Positions 10,582-51,116 of a DNA stretch of 64,000 nucleotides are shown here, one piece after another. The DNA comes from Epiperipatus broadwayi. Lineage: Eukaryota > Animalia > Onychophora. The notes under the pieces were generated by a model that did no database searches, was not told where the DNA came from, and saw nothing but the letters and a program-made list of their open reading frames with translations. How positions within the stretch are numbered: position 1 is the stretch's first letter; the number at the start of each line of letters is the position of its first letter. Where the stretch lies: NCBI GenBank assembly GCA_028023455.1, contig JAQFVV010000003.1, positions 20,584,001 to 20,648,000 on the forward strand. The letters run 5' to 3'. The position numbers and the translations under genes were made by a program.

Positions 10582-12392
10582 CTGTATATAAAAAGTAAAA
10601 GCATGAATATAGTAAAAAAAACAGAGGAGAAAAGGTTTTTTTTAAAAAAATAAACATTTTTATTTTAAAAAATTACATATACTGTAAATATATAAAAAAG
10701 AATCTTTAGAAAAGTTTTAATCAAGCAGTTACTTTATATTACAATTATAATTGGTTTATATTTTATTTACTCTTAAGATTATCAAAAATAATATATTTTT
10801 TCTTTTTTATTGTGATTTAATTATTCCCATTGTTTAAAGCTATATAATATATTTGCAAAATGTATATAATTATCATTGAAAAAGACTATATTATTGATAA
10901 AACATTGAAGCTAAAAAATTAGAAATAATTTGACTTAGAATAATAAATAGGAATTGCTCTAGAAATGAATTTTGTGATGATTATACAAATCAATCTGTGA
11001 ATCACAGATATGTTTAATTATAGAACATGCTGGTCCATTTTTCTGTTTATTTGTTGTTTTGTAATGTATTTTAATTCATTCAGCAGAACACTTTTCTTAA
11101 TGAACTATTTAAACACCTTGTATAATTGTAGCTCTCAATTTATTCTAACCTCTGCTATATCTTTCCAATGGAAACAATTGACATTGCTTTTTTTTAGAAC
11201 ATCTTTGAGAGAATCCTTGCAACATAGACAGAAATTACTTCTATCACAAAACCATGCTCAAGTTCACTATTGAACACTTTTTTTTAAGGAGTCTTGCATT
11301 GTTCATTAATTTAAATTATCAAATCCAATGAAGGTGTGATTTTACAAAAGTGATTCTATAATATAACATCCAGCAAATAGAAAAACATTGATTTATAAAA
11401 TTTTACAGAGTATTTATAAATGAAATTTCTCTAATGCTTTTATATTGTGCCGATAGAATGTTCAAATATCACTTTCATACGAGAAATTAGCTAACTTAAT
11501 TGCAGTAGTTGTTTCCTGGAATAAAATACCCTATATTTTAACTACATAAAAGCAGCAGCACTTTGAAGGCTGTGTTGCATCCCAACATCTAATTCCACCT
11601 TTCTACTTCTAAAACTACCAAAATATATAAATTGGTATACATTGCCAAACTGAAAACTATCCTAAGTAAAAGTTGATGAGGATTTTTCTTCAGTCATTGG
11701 CTGATAAAGAACTTGAGATTTTTGAAAGTGAGTTAATAAAGTAAAGACTTTATATGTAGCACTTAAAACATTAAGCACATTCTGTAAATGATCTTTTGAA
11801 CTGGCAAAAATAACACAATCATTGAAGATGAAGTTCTTATTTTCATTTTTAATCAATTCAAATTAAAAATTCTACCATCAAAGCTGTATCATATCTTGAT
11901 CCCTGTTTCATTAAACTGCTTATAAACAATTCCAAAAATCACTGACATAAAAATTGAAAACAATGTTGAAGCAAGGGCCCATTTTTGTATAACACCAGTT
12001 TTATTTCAAATGCCTACCTGTAGTAATAATACTTCCTTTCATTCCATCATGTAAAAGCTATATAATATTAATAAATTTTGGTGAACAGCTAATTAATTTC
12101 AAATAATGCTGTCCTTGATCAAATCAATAAAAACAATACATATATAACACTCCACTGTTCACAACATTATTTTTTGCAGTGATTTGGATACAATAACTAT
12201 ATTAGTAATACATCTTAATTATCTAAAACTACAATGAGTCGCTGAAAACCATCTATGAATGCAAGTAACCTATTTAACAAAATCGTTGAAAGTATCTTTG
12301 CTATAGTGAAGAATAAATCAATAAAAACAATATATATCATTCCATTGTTCACAAGATTTTTTTTTCATTGACCTGGATACAATAACTATATT

Positions 12393-13018
12393 AATATATT
12401 CGGGATTCGAACTCAGACTTTCACACAACCCACTGCTCTCAGTGCTATCTCATATTGCTGACCCACCTGATCACACACATGCTGAAAAGATAAATAATCA
12501 CCAATAAACGTATTTCATGCTAAACCAGCAATCATCAGTTGGTCTAGATTACTATTCTCACACATATATACAATCAGTGCTCAGCTTTATATTAAGATAG
12601 CCGATCTTCATACTTTAATGGACAGGCTTCAAACTATTCCAATTCACAACTCTTCAGCTTTCCATTTCATTGAAAATCTGATGATGGCACATTCAAAGCC
12701 CTTGTTAGTGCCAAGGTTGTCATCCTACTCATGTTGACATATTAGTCATTCCGACCCCTCATGTACAGGAGAATAATCCATTTATACGTATATATGTGAG
12801 GAATGGGCAGACCTTTTACACACTATTTATATAAATTAATACATTGTACAGGCTTAAACCTGCATTTATATATGTAATATATTTGGATGCATGTGTGTGT
12901 GATCAGGTGGGTCAGCAATATGAGATAGCACTGAGAGTAGTGGGTTGTGTGAAAGTCTGAGTGCGAATCCCGAATATATTACATATATAAATGCAGGTAT
13001 AAGCCTGTACAATGTATT
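12393..13018 (-). mobile_element. Retrozyme-like non-autonomous retroelement with hammerhead, B-box and 5'-inverted segment
   Basis: 12-bp TSD AATAACTATATT (12381-12392, 13019-13030). Inverted repeats 12392-12482/12889-12981 and 12835-12883/12973-13021. Contains a hammerhead and GAGTTCGAATCCCG on the same (minus) strand. Confidence 0.75.
12496..12550 (-). ncRNA. Minimal type I hammerhead ribozyme (near-canonical)
   Basis: Minus: AATC-TAG-ACCAA-CTGATGA-TTGCT-GGTTT-AGCAT-GAAA-TACGTTTA-TTGGT-GATT. Intact CUGAUGA and GAAA cores; stem I ACCAA/TTGGT plus AATC/GATT; stem II TGCT/AGCA; near-palindromic TACGT(T) stem III; UUA triplet. Two mismatches from an ideal fold. Confidence 0.75.
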
Positions 13019-14949
13019 AATAACTATATTAGTAATACCTATTAATTATCTAAAACTACAATGAGTCTCTGATAACCTTCTATGAATGGAAGTAACCTAT
13101 TCAACAAAATCATTGAAAGTATCTTTACTGTAGTGAAGAATAATATTTCCCAATAATTACTGCAATCTTATCTATTCCCTTCGTTTTTAAAATTGGAACA
13201 ATAAAAGCAATCTTAATATTGTATGCCACCACTTCATGAAGCCATATATTTCTAAAATATTCCAATAATGTTGGAAACTAATATACCACTATAGTTTAAA
13301 ATTTCTCCAGATATATCATCAGGACTTGCAACCTTTTCATTTTTTAGATTACAAATAACTATTTGACTTTACTATGTTGGATATCTTGGTCCAAATTTAA
13401 ATGAGAAGACAAAACGGATATATCATTATAACTCATTATCTCAATTCTTTGATCATTATTCAAAACATCCATCTATTCAAAATGCCATTATTGGATTTAA
13501 TAGAATTGTGACATTGTTTCATAGATCAACATGTTTTCAATGATAAAAAAAAAAAGAAAAAGTTCCAGAATAACCACAATCTATAAATGGATGCATCTTT
13601 TTTAGAATCGTAATCCACCAATCATTTTTAAGTATTCTTGTCAGCCATTGAATTTCTGCCTTCGGATCTCTAGATTTATTATGAAGTTCCATATCTAATT
13701 TATTATTCTGCCAAACAGAAATGCTTTTTCTTTTAATTAAATTACTAATATGATTATTATGAGAAAAATAATCATAATTTTTCTTTTTAATGAATCCAAT
13801 AAAAGATTTACTTATATCCACAACATTCCCTTTAAAAGAAGTGCGTACTTCAATAATGTGAAATTTCTGAAAGTCAAAATTAGCAATTTTCATATTTAAT
13901 ATCTGTTGATATTTTTCTAAACAATGAACATTAATTTATTTGTGAATATGACTGGAATAATATCTTTTTTTTAATAAAAATATTTTAATATTGAAGCACA
14001 ATAATCTATGATCTGTGTTTGTAAGTGTTCATGTAATATAAACTTTTGTATTTAGACTCTTAATTATATTTCTTAAATACCATTGTTTTAAGTGTGGATG
14101 CACCCATGATCCTTTATAGTGTTTTTCCTACCCTAAACAATACGTTAGTTTTTGTCAATCCATGTGTTGTTCAGAAATTCAATAAATCATCTGAAATGAT
14201 AGTATCAATACTGATATTTCCAATGTCTCCAAGAAGAAAAATTTGATCTTTTAATTGTATTACTGTAAGAATGTTATCCTTTTTTTTTTTTTTTCTGAAT
14301 CTAAGATATGAACATAGGATCTAGTGAAACAAGCACAAGAAGTACACTATTAGCCTTTTATTAATGCAATAAAGAATTCCAACAATAGAAGATATTAAAC
14401 TATACTGTATAGTAAATTCAATATCATGCATTCACTGATTGATCTGCCTTTCCAACAAAACTTGCAACCACTTGTCTCATCTATTAAACGTTTCTCCTTT
14501 GGGAGATGAGTTTCACTAAGAGCAACTATATTGATCTTAAATCTTGGCAGCTCTATAGCTACTTGTTAAATCCTCCATTCTAGTCTTGAAGAAATTGTAT
14601 CAAGCAAATTCAGCATGTTCTATGTGCCTATATTAAAAAAAAATAAATTATAATATTTTTAGTACTATCACTGCCTCCAGTTTTACCTCTTCTACTGATA
14701 TATTATTATTTCTATGCTGCAATTAGTCACCAATCATGACAATGTAGCCAGACTGTGTGAGACAGGCCATTTTCAGACCACATTTTCTTGGCCCTTCCAC
14801 TTCTGCAGGAAGAAGAATCTCTAAATAGGGTGCCTAAACATACAATCTTTACCAAATGAAACTACTGTCTTACTCAAATCAAATTATAGAGGTATGAAAA
14901 TAGAAGCATATTTTATTTTATATTATTGATATTGAATAAAATTAAATTC

Positions 14950-21119: not shown

Positions 21120-23600
21120 TGTGATGTCTTATGATCCGCGATGATTTGCTATCATGACGTCATTCAAGGAATGACTGCAGACTAGATTATCATTGTCTGC
21201 GGTATTAATGTTTTGACTGTAACTAGTAAACAAATGTTAATAAATAGTGCTAAGTCACTTCTTAGAATCCTAACAAGTTTTTGGCTGGTTTGTTATTTCT
21301 AGACACTGAAACACTACACCAGTTTTGGGGACGAGGATTGGATATGCGCAATACTGAATATTTTTTTTTTTCACACAGATGTAGAGATCTTGACATTATT
21401 ATTAATCGTACATAGGATGCCGAACATATTTATATATACTCCAACTTTGTTTTCTATTTGATTTATAATGGCAACTATTGGTCCTTTAGCACCTTTCAAT
21501 GTTGACTCACCACAAATGTGGGATACATATGCATCACAGGTGAATTTCTTTTGTGAAGCTAACAATATTATTCCTAACAAAAAGAAACGTGCAACACTCC
21601 TCGCTGTCTGCGGACTAAGAACATTAAGCATTCTTCATTCTCTTATATCACCTGTGTTGTCTCATGACAAGTCATATCAAGAATTAGTAAATATTTCAAA
21701 ACAGTATTTTAATCCACAACCTTCCGTTATTTACCAATGTTTCCAATTTTACCGTCATTGGCAACGAGGAGAAAATGTGAGTGCATTTTTAGCCGACCTT
21801 CGATTTTGGTCTTTCACTAACAGAGCATCTTTGAGATAAATTTGTCTGTGGACTTCGTGATGAAACTATACAGTGCAAACTATTAACAGAAGAAACTTTA
21901 ACATTAGAGATAGCTATACAGCATAGCCTAGCCGCTGAATCTGCATTGGTGCAGGTGCGTGAAATTCGTGCCACAAACACTCCCATGTCGACAGTTGATC
22001 TTATTCAGCGAAACAGATCAACCTTACCCTGCAAAAATATTTCTAGGTTCTCACCGCCTTCTCAAACATCTCCTGCACATAAAAGGATCACTGGTGCATC
22101 TTAATCAGGATTTCCACCTTGCTATGGTTGTGGCAGTCAAGACAATCGAGTGGAATGCCCCTTTAAAAAAACCAAGTGCCATTTCTACCAGAAAATAGGT
22201 CATTTACAGTGTGTATGCCAAGCAAAACAACACACTATTCCTGGATCTGCAAATCAATGCATGGCAGTAATGGAGACGGACGATGACATTGTAGATTATA
22301 TCCATGAGATACGCCACAATGTCTCAACACCTAAATCCTCCGCACATGTGTACATTAATGGCAAGGAATGTAAAGGAAAGTAACTCAGGATCAGAATATT
22401 CTATTTTATCATTTGACACACTATCTGAATTGTGCAATGGAAAAATACCCAAACTACATCCAGTAACAATTAATTACATTACGGGATTTACAGCACCACT
22501 CAATATCATTCAAGGGATATTGTGTTGTACATGTTCAATATGGTGTACATTCATGCCATCTATGTTTATTGATAACAGAGAGTCCTTGTACAAACCTGTT
22601 AGGACGTGAATGGTTCACACCTCTAGATATTTCACTAACTGGAGTTCATCTAATTACTGAACCGTTTATTCAAGATATCATTAACCAATTTCCATAAGTT
22701 TTCAGCACATCTTTACGAACTTACAAGGGTCCAGCTGTATCATTGCCAGTTGATCCTAAATTTCCCCATATCAGACTATGAGCTCGGCCACTACCACTTG
22801 CTATGAAACATAAGATGGATGTTGCTTTAGATACTCTGCTCCATGATGAAATCATTGAACCAGTGGAAAACCCTGTGTGGACAACACAAGTGGTACCGAT
22901 TCTTAAACCAACAGGAGAGGTGAGATTATGCAGTGACTACAAGGTAACAGTTAACAGAGCTCTTCTGAATCACCCATATCCTAACCTGAGGTACACCATC
23001 TTCTGACTTCTCTTCCTCCTAGCTCCATCTTTTCAAAAATTGTCTTAGATAAGGCCTACCTACAACTTCCAGTTGATGATGTCTGCAAACATACAGACAA
23101 TCATCACTCACTGTGGAGCCTTTCGTGTAAAATGTTTACAGTTCGAAATCTGTGTTGCACCCGGAATGTTTCAGTGCATTATAGACAATTTACTCGGAAA
23201 CATTTTTGGAGTTTTTCTATATTTCGATGACATATTAATTTGTGCGTCTTCAACAATTGATCTATGTTCAAAATTATGTACTGTGTTTAAAAAGTTAGCA
23301 CACAGTGGATTGTGGGCTAATAAAGAAAAATGCATATTCGGAGTAGATTCTGGGAAATTTCTGGTATATACAATTGACAGTAAAGGCCTGCATCCATCTC
23401 CAAATAAAGCAACTGCAATTCAAAATGCTTCCTCTCCTAGGAACAAAATAGAACTGAAAGCATTCTTAGGTCTTAATAAATTTTTATAACAATTTCCTTC
23501 CGGATCGCGCAACTGTAGCTGAACCTTTACATCGTTTATTACAGACATCATACTACTCAACTTTTCCCAAAGTAAAGACTTGACATATTATGGACTACTA
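21120..23600 (+). mobile_element. 3'-truncated Ty3/Gypsy (Mag/K02A2.6-like) LTR retrotransposon: 5' LTR, PBS, gag, protease, RT
   Basis: TG…CA LTR candidate 21120-21318 with AATAAA; PBS-like TGGGGACGAGG at 21326. Gag MATIGPLAPFN…WDTY…FFCEAN…KKRATLLAVCG; zinc knuckle CPFKKTKCHFYQKIGHLQCVC; RT WTTQVVPILKP.GEVRLCSDYKVTVN and YFDDILI. Frameshifted, no 3' LTR seen. Confidence 0.93.
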
Positions 23601-28622: not shown

Positions 28623-31600
28623 GTAAGCAATAAATCTTTTCTACACTCCGTAGCATCAATGGTGGAGCATGAGCCTCAACTAATTCTAACGTCTAATTCT
28701 AATATTGATTCTAATAAGACCTATTCATTTACTTAAATATAGGAATGGTATGTCTGTGACATTGAGTCATTAGATAGCAGCACAATAATTAATTAGAAAC
28801 GTTAATTTTAGAATAAAATGAATGGAGACGAACCACAAGTAGCTTAAATTCACATATGTATTTAATAAAACATTTATATAATTTTTCTAATGTCTCTCTG
28901 TTTTATTTCATAAATTTGTTAACATACATATTGATCCTGTCATTAATTATACCTCGAGTAAGGAAACGGTATACTTCATATGCCAATTTAACAAATGAAA
29001 CGAAGAGTTTTATGGTAGACGGCCACTCAGGTCTGAGATGTACGAGAAATATTTTAAATAACCCTATTTTAAATATAACTTTATTATAAGTGAAATTATT
29101 TTAAGAGAGAAATAATTGAATCACCTTTTAGGAATTAGTTTCGAAGAGAGTGACACGTTTAAAATATAAACAGATCGTGATATTTGCAACTAAATATTTC
29201 AAGATTGTAAAACAAATAAATTAATCAGACCGTAGTCAATCTGCCACGATGTGCTCAGAATAAAAGAAATTGGACAGACCCAGCATTTGATATTGCATCA
29301 CCAGCATAGACTCAATTCATCTGCCCCATTCCAGTGACACCAAAAAATAAAGAAAGAATGGTCTGCACCATTGGCAAACCTCAAGATATTTCAGGTGAAA
29401 GAATGGATTACCCCGGGTCTTCCGAAGTTGTTTTTCATATCCTGATAAAAAAATTCATAGTCAGTGAAATTATCACATGGTCTAATTCTGATTTAGCAAT
29501 CAGAAAAAACAAAAGACAAGTGATCAAGCAAAATGCTGGCAAGGCAAAATACAAGTACTATAAAAATACATTTTTAGAATTTAATATAAAATTGTACTGA
29601 GCTATTAAAGATTACACAAATGTTATACAGACTGACCAATATCAGACCAACAAGAATAAAATAAGCATTAATATTATTACAAATATCATTTTCTGGGCGA
29701 CATCTCTCTCCCCTCAAAACAAAATCCCACCAATATTTTTTAATTAAACATTTGATACTCTCTTTTACTATTTAGCAAGAATAAACTTTCTAAACTCCCT
29801 CCCTTTCATTCTTATAACAGGAAATAAGATAACTAAATAAAATCTCATACTTGATCTAGCGTCTCCCCAAAACTAAACCGTATACGCATAAAATATTTCA
29901 AAATATATAAAGTAATATAAAATTATTTCATCTCGACAAAAAAAGATTGCTCCAAGTATTAATCATTTAGAGCTAAAGAGTTAGTTATTTACTGACAGAC
30001 ATTGGTCGGGTAATAGGAAGTAAAATATTTAATTATATAAAATTTTTGTCAAGATGGAACAAATTAGTATAGAGTGATTTCATTTTAAATAAGACATTTA
30101 TCGGTCTTAAACAAATACATTCTTAAGTACATAATAATAATAAATTTTCTGAAACGCTTTAAGAGAAAGTTTAGCATTAAGAGGCATAACTTTAAAATAG
30201 ACAGAATGAGAGCAGAAACATTAAATTTAAATTTATAGAAAGTCAAAGGGTACAGAGTTTAGTTAAGGCAGTTATATTAAATTAAGGGGATTTCATTTAA
30301 GAAGACACTAAAGGTAGCAAAATTACATTATCAGGTCAACTGGAGTTTTGAGAATAAATCAGGCGGTTAGAAATAAACAAATTTGAAACATATTACCTAA
30401 TTTATTCTGAGTCTTTTGGAAATTTGGATCCTATGATGAAATACAAATTTCCGCACAGGCATAGCTAGCTATGAATTTAATTTGAGAGTTCACAGTTCAG
30501 CAGTCCAACAGTTACATATTATGATGAGGTTTCTCCAGCTTATGGTATTTTGGCGATCATACTTGGGATAGCGGGGAAGACAGGCAGGCTACAAGGCTAT
30601 CTACTCCACTACCATGCTTCTAAATATTTCATATTTATTGAAAATTTAACTGGCGTGGCTTCACTAGGCAATCAATGAACGAAAACTATGACTGGCTGAC
30701 CTCCATTGTTCTTGTGAGCTATTTATACCCTTTTCTGACTACCTTTGGGAAATTCCCTTTTTCTTCGCCGAAGGCTAAGTGGATATGTTAAAATTCCGGT
30801 GACCGCAATTATCGACTTAAAATATTTTGCATTGTATTCTTGAGATCCACTCTCCTGATACACCCAATGATTTTATTGTTTAAAATCTATTTTTAATTTA
30901 ATGTAGATTTGAAGATTTCATATTTCAAATATCTTTTCCATTTTAATTTTACTTTAATTAGAAAATTCCATTACCATTTTGTTAATGGATTTTCTTTTGT
31001 TTGACACTACGAAATGTTAGCAGGGTTTATCATGAAAGTGAATCTCCTGAATAAAATATTTAAAAAAAATAGCATATTAAAATTTATTTATTGATTTTTA
31101 TAAAAGTTTCCATCTGTAATTATATATATGTATTTACGCATATATATATCTGGGCCCCTCCAATATTTATAATAAAAACATCTTAAATAGAAAATTGATA
31201 TTGTAATCACTTATTTTCTGGTCTAAAAATTAAATGTATATAAACTGGCAGACGGAAAGTTTTATAAACATCGTAACACATGTGGATCTGGTTTGATCCT
31301 AGTCTAGCAATCTAGAAAAACATCGCTTCAATATATATTAATAAAAAATTGAGGGAACATATATATATATATTTTACTGAGTGTGTGTTCACTCATTCAT
31401 TGAAACAATAATAAGAAAGAAAAAATGTATTGCATCACTTTAAATTTTTTTGAAAAAAAAAAGGATTAGTAAAATCTCTGTCCTTCATTTCAATTAAATA
31501 TGCTCTAAACATTTTTCTATTCTTTCAATAACTTTATTGTAAAACTTTTAGCATTGTGCTTCAAAAACATTTTATTAAGCAGAATACTGAACATCAAATT

Positions 31601-32745: not shown

Positions 32746-35099
32746 GTAATAAATAACATTGTCTTATTTCCATTTCTAAGTAAAGTAGCTAATTCGAAGC
32801 CTCCCAGATTCAAATAATAATGAACTCTATAGCATGCATAAAGAACTATTGATATGCGTGTTTTGAAATGTTGTGTATGTGAATACTCTTTGTTATATTA
32901 TATTGATTTCATGTATTTATTTAAATGCTATGTATTATTTAATGCTTGTGTTATATTCTAGTTTATCGTATGAATTCAGAGTGTGCTTAGTCAGTATATG
33001 TAATTATCATTGTCTAATTTAATTAAGTTCTTTAAAAGTATTTAAAATCAGAATAATAAATATTTAGTCAAATAAATTACCTTGAAACGTAATATTTGTT
33101 GGTCAATTCTTTTACCATTAATTAAAGCAATAATGTGTTATTGTATTACAATTGATTGAGCTAGTCTTGGGATATTTCGAGTGCTGGATTATGGGCCTGT
33201 CCAAACACGTTAGTTCTCGTAACTAGCTGGCACATGAGTTTTACCTCAAAACAAATTAAGTGCTTAGATATTAGGAGTTTGAATCTAGCAGTCAAAGTGG
33301 GCCACGGTCTGGAAATGTGATCATGTTATGCATTGCATAGCTTGGTCTGACTGTGGGTATCATTTATCGACGGTATTCTCCTCTCTGCTTGAAGGGCCAG
33401 TCTGTTTACGTAATATTTATAATATAAAATTATAAATTTATGATAAACAAGGTTTGAACCCAGCTAAACCTACAAATAGATTACGCTGCATCATCTCTTC
33501 CGAATGAACCCAGTACAATACATAAACATTTAAAAATAAAGAAAAAGTTCTCATAATAGCTTGTAAAGTTAATGAATCATATAAAGGCAAGATATAAATA
33601 GTAAAAAAATACAAGTAAACAAAAATATAAGCATATAGATGTATAAACTTAATAATATTATTTAATTAAACATTACTATGATAAGATGTCAAATCTATTT
33701 TTAAATTTAACCACTTAACAACAACAATAAAAAAAAACAATAAAAGTTTTAGAGTGCTATTTTTAAATCTTATAAACACATTGATGGAAGAAAAAAGAAA
33801 GATATCATAAACCTGACTTCAAATTAAGTGAATTTCAAATGATTGTTGTTTGAGTTGCAAAATACATTATGTTCCAAACAAAATTAATTGACAATTTTAT
33901 AATAAAAAAACAAAAACAACTTAATAATTAAAAAAAGTAGGAAAGTATTACTTTTATTAATAATATAAATAAATGAAATATTCTATCTAACTTATAAACA
34001 TATTCTTTTTATTTTTAACTACCTGAATTATAAATGAATTTATAGCATTGGCAATGAATACTTTGAATAACAATGCTGTATACAAAAGCATTTTATATTT
34101 GTATATACAATTAATCTTAACTCTAATTGGGGTTTAAATTTTGAAATAATGTCCTAGAATAAATTGTAGTGAAACAAATAACCAGCAATAAAATTGTTCT
34201 GTTTTGAGAATATTATGAGACAATCTAATTCATTAAAAAACTGTATAAGGTTTGGAAAAGTCAGTAGTGAAAGAAGATAAGCAGCAATAAGATGGACTCT
34301 ATCACAACAATAATATGTTATTAAATTAAATAAATGATGTCATTCCTGAGAAATAATATCAATATGATTGCTAGAAATTGATCTGAAAACATCTAATAAG
34401 AAACAAAACTAACACAAACTATAGGCCAGTGTTAACTTTTGGTGACAATACCTGTTTCCTGGTTACATGATATGCCTTCATGCAAAATTGTATCATTAAT
34501 CTCTTATTTGCCCCTATTATTTTCAAATAAAATCTATAAATTTCATAATAGACAAATATTAATTCTTATTAAGCGCGATGTCAGCACGTAATACTTATAT
34601 AAGGCTAAAACCTTAGTACATGCGCCTTCCAGAGGAAGTTATCATTCAGACAATTTATTCTAAAATAAAATGATCATTGTGTCCACTAAATTTTTAACAC
34701 ACACACTCACAGACAACATGTAGTACTATTATTTAATAATATAAGATATATAGATGAAATAATAAAAAATGATGGCAAGATTATTTTTACCGGACAAATA
34801 TTTCCAATAATAAATAGATATCATTAATATATATGTACATATTGTAACAGTTAGATTCGTATGCCCCGCTAACATGCTGCAAAATCCAAGAACAATATAT
34901 GAAACTTAGCACCTCTGGGCAGGAATGCCTTCCAAAAAATCAAGTTTGAATCCTATTGGTCTGTGCTCCACAACCTAAACTATGTGAACAACACTTCTGA
35001 TGCTACTAATAGTTAATCTTCCTTTTATTCCTGGTGGTCAGGGAGAAACAAAAGACTCTAACTTAAATAAAATATGCCCTAGGTTTTCTAACAGATTTT

Positions 35100-39071: not shown

Positions 39072-39177
39072 CGGTCAAGAGCGTTGGTGGTCGAGAGGTC
39101 AGCGACAGCTGCATTACAAGCAGTTTCCCGGTTTAGCGGGTTCGCTTCCTGGCTGATGCTATGACACATGAGAAAAA
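39072..39177 (+). mobile_element. tRNA-derived SINE, copy 1
   Basis: TSD AAAACAAAAACT (39060-39071, 39178-39189); A-box-like TGGTCGAGAGG, B-box-like GGGTTCGCTTCC, A-rich tail; homologous to 51005-51116. Confidence 0.85.
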
Positions 39178-51004: not shown

Positions 51005-51116
51005 GTCAAGCATTGTTAGCCGGAAGATCATTGCAGCCACCTTGCAAGCAAGTAGTTGGTTGCAGATGGTTGTGGGTTCGCATCCCAGCCAATGCTATGA
51101 CATATGGAAAAAAAAC
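51005..51116 (+). mobile_element. tRNA-derived SINE, copy 2
   Basis: 15-bp TSD AAAACTGGATGACAC (50990-51004, 51117-51131); B-box-like GGGTTCGCATCCC; CTTGCAA anticodon-like loop; A tail. Confidence 0.88.

Follow-up and report, generated by a model that had tools for sequence, protein, structure and literature searches.

A 626-bp hammerhead-bearing insertion in Epiperipatus broadwayi, probably a non-autonomous Penelope-like retroelement of the animal retrozyme type

The retrozymes of animals have been characterized as tandem units of 150–450 bp with a low GC content and type I hammerhead ribozymes (PMC7229834, Cervera and de la Pena 2020), and a recent preprint by Li, Clavereau and Pollet (2026), which contains no discussion of tails or inverted arms, argues that they are non-autonomous derivatives of Penelope-like elements (PLEs) (bioRxiv 10.64898/2026.07.22.740005). 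In this study, a hammerhead-bearing insertion from the onychophoran Epiperipatus broadwayi is described. It is located at positions 12393–13018 of a 64-kb stretch of contig JAQFVV010000003.1 (64,000 nucleotides, hereafter the window). This kind of element is already described (PMC7229834; 10.64898/2026.07.22.740005), and the present copy is a well-preserved example and not a new kind.

Insertions of PLEs are characterized by heavy 5' truncation, partial tandems and, often, a second copy, inverted and 5'-truncated, at the 5' end, with a tail of 30–40 bp at one end only (PMC8557442). In the PLEs of rotifers, target-site duplications (TSDs) of 8–10 bp are accompanied by a tail of 31 bp and by palindromes where the inverted copies meet (PMC3846280). 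Purified PLE protein cuts both strands of AT-rich DNA in vitro after 5'-ATT-3' and extends each of them; its reverse transcription begins at two internal sites that lie roughly 100 nt downstream from the hammerhead and are one tail length apart, and insertion does not depend on hammerhead cleavage (PMC11167929). The hammerheads of PLEs are minimal, have a palindromic helix III, act as dimers and lie in pseudo-LTRs (pLTRs; LTR, long terminal repeat), and a G10.1–C11.1 pair is listed as highly conserved by Cervera and de la Pena (PMC4209133). A third group, the schistosome repeats Sm-alpha and Sj-alpha (Ferbeyre 1998, Laha 2000 per PMC6765202), comprises short, non-coding, tandem-dependent repeats in which a hammerhead is followed, past the cut site, by a tRNA-type promoter motif.

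The insert was delimited to 12393–13018 (626 bp), exactly as in the preliminary description of this locus, which had been made from the sequence alone. It is flanked by two copies of the 12-mer AATAACTATATT, at 12381–12392 on the left and at 13019–13030 on the right; the base that follows each copy is A (12393 on the left side), so the TSD measures either 12 or 13 bp. With AAT at its beginning and ATT at its end, the 12-mer presents a 3' end in ATT on both strands. Only 0.275% of the 12-mers in the window, which has a GC content of 27%, are of this AAT...ATT form. A third occurrence of AATAACTATATT, at 12192–12203, is found about 190 bp upstream in an intact paralogue of the interrupted host segment, and the alignment of the two is unbroken across the insertion point. 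Since the intact paralogue reads through the point of interruption and provides an internal empty site, the insertion and its TSD, both claimed previously, can be considered secure. No further copy of the insert was found in the window when it was compared by BLAST with the whole of it.

The host is a decayed long interspersed nuclear element (LINE) at 11545–14565 on the minus strand, the same strand as the main copy of the insert, with endonuclease-like and reverse-transcriptase-like remnants recognized by motifs in stop-free pieces. Eight of these pieces were searched with Pfam and only one weak RVT_1 match was obtained, while their weak Atlas neighbours were Exo_endo_phos and RVT_1 clusters. 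The LINE nature of the host, as proposed previously, is supported by these remnants, but its assignment to the RTE clade is not, and the host is better regarded as a generic decayed LINE. The uninterrupted target belongs to a tandem duplication of about 190 bp in the reverse-transcriptase region of this LINE (12122–12311 versus 12312–12392 plus 13019–13143). The duplication is older than the insertion, because the 125 nt that were compared are 92% identical while the 12-bp TSD is perfect.

The main copy (12393–12886, minus strand) consists of one unit of about 483 nt plus a terminal redundancy of about 11 nt (direct repeat, spacing 483). Read on the minus strand, it comprises segment B, the body, the hammerhead and a 112-nt head, which occupies the sequence between the hammerhead cut and the 3' end of the copy (12393–12504); this end would correspond to a first reverse-transcription start. 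A central junction AT (12887–12888) separates the two facing 5' ends and forms, with the next four bases, the palindrome ATGCAT (12887–12892). It is followed by an inverted, 5'-truncated second copy on the plus strand (12889–12980), which contains the head only and starts 21 nt downstream of the equivalent of the cut site, and then by a 38-nt tail (12981–13018, plus strand) that repeats the initial 38 nt of segment B and holds a 7-bp hairpin. The tail extends the inverted arm past the 3' end of the main copy, to what may be a second reverse-transcription start. In the right part as a whole (12889–13018, 130 nt, plus strand) the head is joined directly to the beginning of segment B, as had been noticed before and as the alignments of the inverted arms confirm: 12392–12479 is 98% complementary to 12894–12981, and 12828–12886 is 92% complementary to 12970–13028. 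The 5' ends of both copies face each other and their 3' ends abut the TSD.

Because the inverted arm joins head to segment B, the unit must have been present in the template in tandem or circular form. The same private variants, which differ from the majority of the family, are found in both arms (12446/12927 and 12427/12946), and therefore the arms were derived from one source in one event. The alternative of two nested independent insertions was ruled out by these shared variants and by the single TSD around the whole structure. The read depth described below drops sharply at 12393 and 13018, which are the boundaries of the insertion.

The unit is short (483 nt), with a GC content of 36%, and non-coding, as is usual for retrozymes. 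Its longest open frame, determined on a triple repeat of the unit, has 79 aa and is antisense, and no homologue of this stop-free frame was found by a protein-space search. The minimum-energy fold of the whole unit had a z-score of -1.93. In this fold, a GU-rich helix of about 16 bp pairs 12557–12580 with 12465–12490 (minus strand), that is, the upstream flank with the start of the head, and encloses the hammerhead in a domain of its own.

The hammerhead motif is of the minimal type I and is located at 12500–12543 on the minus strand, where it reads, from 12543 to 12500, ACCAA-CUGAUGA-UUGCUGGUUUAGCAU-GAAA-UACGUUU-A|UUGGU. Stem I has 5 bp (ACCAA/UUGGU) and is open-ended, stem II has 4 bp (UGCU/AGCA), and stem III with its loop reads UACGUU. 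All core nucleotides are present (CUGAUGA at 12538–12532, GAAA at 12516–12513, U at 12506 and A at 12505 as H17), together with the A15.1/U16.1 pair. Cleavage is predicted between 12505 and 12504, in agreement with the site proposed previously. When both strands of the window were scanned with a hammerhead descriptor of our own, 12543–12500 was the single match, against an expectation of 0.03 per 64 kb calculated from mononucleotide shuffles. A hammerhead motif with a complete core is therefore confirmed on the minus strand.

The abundance of the family was assessed with a table of contigs from public reads, obtained from one DNA run and three RNA-labelled runs of three organisms and placed on 12250–13150; the family majority mentioned in this study is the majority letter at single positions of this table and not a full-length consensus. 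The DNA run alone contributed 52,053 contigs matching this region, and the summed depth reached 0.06–8.9 million inside the insert, in comparison with tens to thousands in the flanks. The maximum of 8.9 million was reached in the bin 12498–12528, which is the 3' half of the hammerhead; the region of the motif was the deepest in all four runs, and CUGAUGA and GAAA were untouched by the 40 best-supported differences of the table. Contigs of the DNA run contained joints that go back from 12886 to 12406, from 12877 to 12401 and from 12881 to 12410; in these joints the units follow each other head-to-tail, with a period of about 481–483 nt. Head-to-tail tandem copies, which are characteristic of retrozymes, are thus present in the genome, as shown by these joints and by the head-to-B junction of the insert. 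The preliminary description had proposed a tandem or circular monomer of about 490 nt: a very high-copy family with tandem junctions at nearly this period was found; as these junctions were seen in DNA contigs, they are no evidence of the circular RNA that it suggested. In the RNA-labelled runs the summed depth over the element was also high, with a ratio to the flanking LINE not clearly above that of the DNA, in strandless contigs and with DNA carry-over possible; transcription of the family is plausible.

Position 12507 is A in this copy and T in 92–99% of the depth in all four runs. The stem III/loop region is consequently UACGUU (AUACGUUU) in this copy, while that of the family majority is UACGUA, within the 8-nt palindrome AUACGUAU, which reaches from A15.1 to U16.1; the family majority therefore shows the very short, palindromic helix III that defines the minimal, dimer-acting hammerheads of PLEs and of many animal repeats. 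Dimerisation was computed to gain -13.9 kcal/mol when the majority letter is present, in comparison with -7.5 kcal/mol for this copy. By analogy with other hammerheads of the PLE type, any activity of the ribozyme is probably dimeric, and the change at 12507 probably impairs it in this copy. The PLE hammerhead known from the literature is assisted by protein. The loose-end consensuses of related subfamilies (12559/12560) carried the canonical CUGAUGAG at the same place, with G at 10.1.

The insert most probably represents a single retrotransposition, into an old LINE, of a non-coding hammerhead element of about 483 nt, of the animal non-LTR retrozyme or non-autonomous PLE type. The features of a PLE insertion that were found include the inverted 5'-truncated copy at the 5' end, inside one TSD, and the 38-nt tail on one end only; the two 3' ends are 38 nt apart, and the predicted cut lies 112 and 150 nt upstream of them. 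These data support the previous proposal of a non-autonomous retroelement that carries a minimal type I hammerhead, with a PLE-like TSD and 5' inverted arm. In the mechanism that we propose, a PLE reverse transcriptase with a GIY-YIG endonuclease, acting in trans, would nick both strands of the AT-rich target after ATT, with a stagger of 12 nt. Each target 3' end would then prime the synthesis of complementary DNA (cDNA) on the RNA of the element at one of two internal starts, 38 nt apart, which lie past the hammerhead cut site at about 112 and 150 nt. The top-strand cDNA would comprise one full unit plus 11 nt and run through the hammerhead site, the bottom-strand cDNA would halt after 130 nt, and the two 5' ends would finally be joined head-to-head. 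The template would have been an uncleaved multimer or a religated circle, because the main copy passes uninterrupted through the cut site. The stop after one turn plus 11 nt fits a template in the form of a circle as well as a fixed start of transcription, and a single copy does not discriminate between them.

Several observations weigh against this interpretation. The match to ATT is a post hoc one, the position of the boundary can be shifted by 1 nt, and the enzyme compared in vitro was from a lizard. Stem II is closed by U.U (12531/12517) and the G10.1–C11.1 pair is absent. The isolated motif favours a CUAGACCA/UGGUUUAG helix, with -9.1 kcal/mol in comparison with -4.3 kcal/mol for the hammerhead-compatible fold. 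Finally, Rfam gave no hammerhead match, either in the whole window at gathering thresholds or on 12300–13100 at E<=10, and the only matches obtained were two snoRNA-like ones due to chance. The Rfam check suggested by the preliminary description was thus negative, but the same models (curated covariance model RF00163) were also applied as a control to four textbook minimal hammerheads from metagenome contigs: three were missed and the fourth was reported with 23.5 bits, below the threshold of 34. The silence of Rfam therefore says little about a minimal hammerhead.

The competing helix lies at 12522–12547 on the minus strand, where CUAGACCA, made up of the 5' side of stem I and bases upstream of it, pairs with UGGUUUAG of loop II; the resulting structure is 4.8 kcal/mol more stable than the hammerhead-compatible one. 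As modelled, this fold could be an inactive alternative conformation of the ribozyme or an argument against its activity.

The control hammerheads were obtained in a search for copies of the family in metagenomes, in which a strict pattern gave no match and a loose pattern gave 120 loci, nearly all of them due to chance. Four of these loci were genuine minimal type I hammerheads with the UACGUA loop (GAAA-UACGUA-U-H in stem III), located at L066:765–808 (minus), L031:651–697 (minus), L033:312–354 (minus) and L003:36–82 (plus); none is homologous to the unit, and their flanks are unrelated. No long reading frames were present in L066, L031 and L033, the three contigs checked. L066 is the contig reported by Rfam below threshold, and L033 shows the same U..U closure of stem II and the same UACGUA loop as the family. 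A covariance model built from these four hammerheads was dropped, since the MAFFT alignment left stem II structurally unaligned.

A second sequence with the appearance of half a hammerhead is found at 12679–12714 on the plus strand, antisense to the unit, where CTGATGA is accompanied by a 6-bp hairpin (TGGCAC...GTGCCA) and AGG stands in place of GAAA. It is probably due to chance; the majority letters at 12688, 12691 and 12692 alter its 5' arm.

The element shares with animal non-LTR retrozymes a short, AT-rich, non-coding unit, a type I hammerhead, head-to-tail repeats together with dispersed monomers, a very high copy number, occurrence in RNA libraries, a TSD longer than 4 bp and a proposed origin from PLEs. 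It differs from them in a slightly longer unit (about 483 nt versus 150–450 bp), in the U.U of stem II and in the structure of the copy, which is a monomer with an inverted arm and not a tandem array. Moreover, most invertebrate retrozymes have canonical hammerheads with loop-loop contacts, whereas the hammerhead of this element is of the minimal PLE type, with a stem III of 1 bp and a 6-nt palindromic loop.

With PLEs the element shares the head-to-head inverted 5'-truncated copy, a tail (38 nt) within the range of 30–40 bp and a palindrome at the junction (PMC8557442, PMC3846280, PMC11167929), the short TSD in AT-rich sequence, both strands of which have ATT at the 3' end, and a hammerhead whose helix III is palindromic and which precedes the putative reverse-transcription starts by roughly 100 nt (PMC4209133). 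In contrast to PLEs, it lacks a reverse transcriptase/GIY-YIG frame, and so it must be mobilised in trans; no remnant of a PLE was recognized in the window; its period is 483 nt instead of about 3 kb, and the G10.1–C11.1 pair is missing. The resemblance to Sm-alpha and Sj-alpha is one of layout only: a short non-coding, tandem-dependent repeat with a hammerhead and, past the cut site, a promoter-like motif. In this element only a B-box-like motif is present, without an A box or a tRNA-like fold, the hammerhead is minimal and not canonical, runs of four T (T4) occur inside the unit, and the signature of the insertion is PLE-like.

These differences bear on the possibility of a tRNA-derived short interspersed nuclear element (SINE) like Sm-alpha, with RNA polymerase III (Pol III) boxes in the head, release from multimers by the hammerhead and mobilisation by a LINE, which is an improbable explanation for this insert. 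Sm-alpha itself unites a Pol III promoter with a hammerhead and requires tandem copies (PMC6765202), and the head contains the sequence GAGTTCGAATCCCG at 12400–12413 on the minus strand, with the B-box-like 11-mer GAGTTCGAATCC at 12403–12413; AGTTCGAATCC departs from the B-box consensus GGTTCGANNCC by one mismatch. The motif is kept by the majority of the family, since the change from T to G at 12963, in the B box of the inverted arm, is opposed by T in 99% of the family depth. Matches of this quality are found five times in the window, against 1.06 expected. On the other hand, no A box (TRGCNNAGTGG) within one mismatch is present anywhere in the element, and consequently no A and B boxes spaced 30–60 nt apart, as in a Pol III type 2 promoter. 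No tRNA was detected by ARAGORN in the window, nor by Rfam, including a search of 12300–13100 at E<=10, and the 112-nt head folds no better than its shuffles (z +0.19). The sense strand carries two T4 runs, at 12676 and 12488, which would be expected to halt Pol III short of a full unit, and a 3' tail of A-rich or simple-repeat sequence is absent. The inverted arm, the 38-nt tail and priming on two strands are signatures of PLEs and not of LINEs or SINEs. Of the tRNA-like head and Pol III-like box proposed in the preliminary description, the first is not borne out, and the second is reduced to one B-box-like 11-mer, with one mismatch and retained by most of the family, that lacks an A box and is accompanied by two T4 runs.

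It could also be argued that the sequence does not represent a separate family but a 5'-truncated fragment, or a solo pLTR tandem, of an autonomous PLE, the 483-nt unit being the pLTR. Copies of PLEs are usually heavily 5'-truncated, with partial tandems and solo pLTRs (PMC8557442, PMC3846280), and their hammerheads sit in pLTRs (PMC4209133). An element of structure pLTR-ORF-pLTR (ORF, open reading frame) would, however, wrap around at about 3 kb, and the wrap-around period in the insertion and in many DNA contigs is about 481–483 nt; the unit is non-coding, its only frame of any length being the antisense one of 79 aa with no homologue found, and the copy number is far beyond that usual for autonomous elements. 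This origin is accordingly considered quite improbable. Least credible of all is that the hammerhead is fortuitous or vestigial and that the sequence is an ordinary satellite-like or dispersed repeat, spread independently of self-cleavage. The missing Rfam match, the U.U at 10.1/11.1, the more stable competing fold, the reverse transcription of this copy through the cut site and the dispensability of hammerhead cleavage for PLE insertion in vitro (PMC11167929) are in line with it. It is opposed by the chance expectation of 0.03 per window and by the fact that, in each of the four runs, the region of the motif has the greatest depth and is shared most widely within the family. The palindrome that defines PLE-type hammerheads is completed precisely by the majority letter at 12507, the related subfamilies carry the canonical CUGAUGAG at the same place, and the unrelated contig L033 combines the same U..U closure of stem II with the UACGUA loop.

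The four other B-box-like matches of the window are located at 28824–28834 (minus strand) and at 33451–33461, 39139–39149 and 51075–51085 (plus strand), and could point to tRNA-derived repeats at those sites.

Within the preferred reading of a non-autonomous, PLE-mobilised element, a more specific proposal can be put forward, although it is doubtful: that the geometry of this copy is the record of a circular 483-nt RNA reverse-transcribed by a PLE enzyme. The main cDNA would then stop where a polymerase rounding the circle would meet its own product, and the conserved head with its B-box-like motif, which immediately precedes the two putative reverse-transcription starts, would be the entry module for the enzyme or a Pol III promoter as in Sm-alpha. 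Whatever the form of the template, a role of the conserved head as a recognition and initiation region for the reverse transcriptase appears more likely than a Pol III role. If the proposal of a circular template were true, the copy would be a genomic footprint showing that the circles of animal retrozymes, and not linear multimers, template transposition.

The added value of this copy is modest and lies in the clean display of the full PLE insertion signature in one place. It contributes evidence at the level of a single insertion, with a datable empty site, a clean TSD and both arms preserved, and it makes visible, in a non-coding hammerhead element, features reported for PLE protein in vitro, such as nicks after ATT with extension on both strands and two starts one tail apart. 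The family is also a convenient substrate for testing the mobilisation of such elements in trans by PLEs and the use of circles versus multimers as templates.

Elsewhere in the window, remnants of an LTR retrotransposon were observed at 21371–23489. They include an ORF at 23073–23489 (plus strand) with reverse-transcriptase motifs, whose nearest Atlas clusters are RVT_1 and gag-pol fragments.

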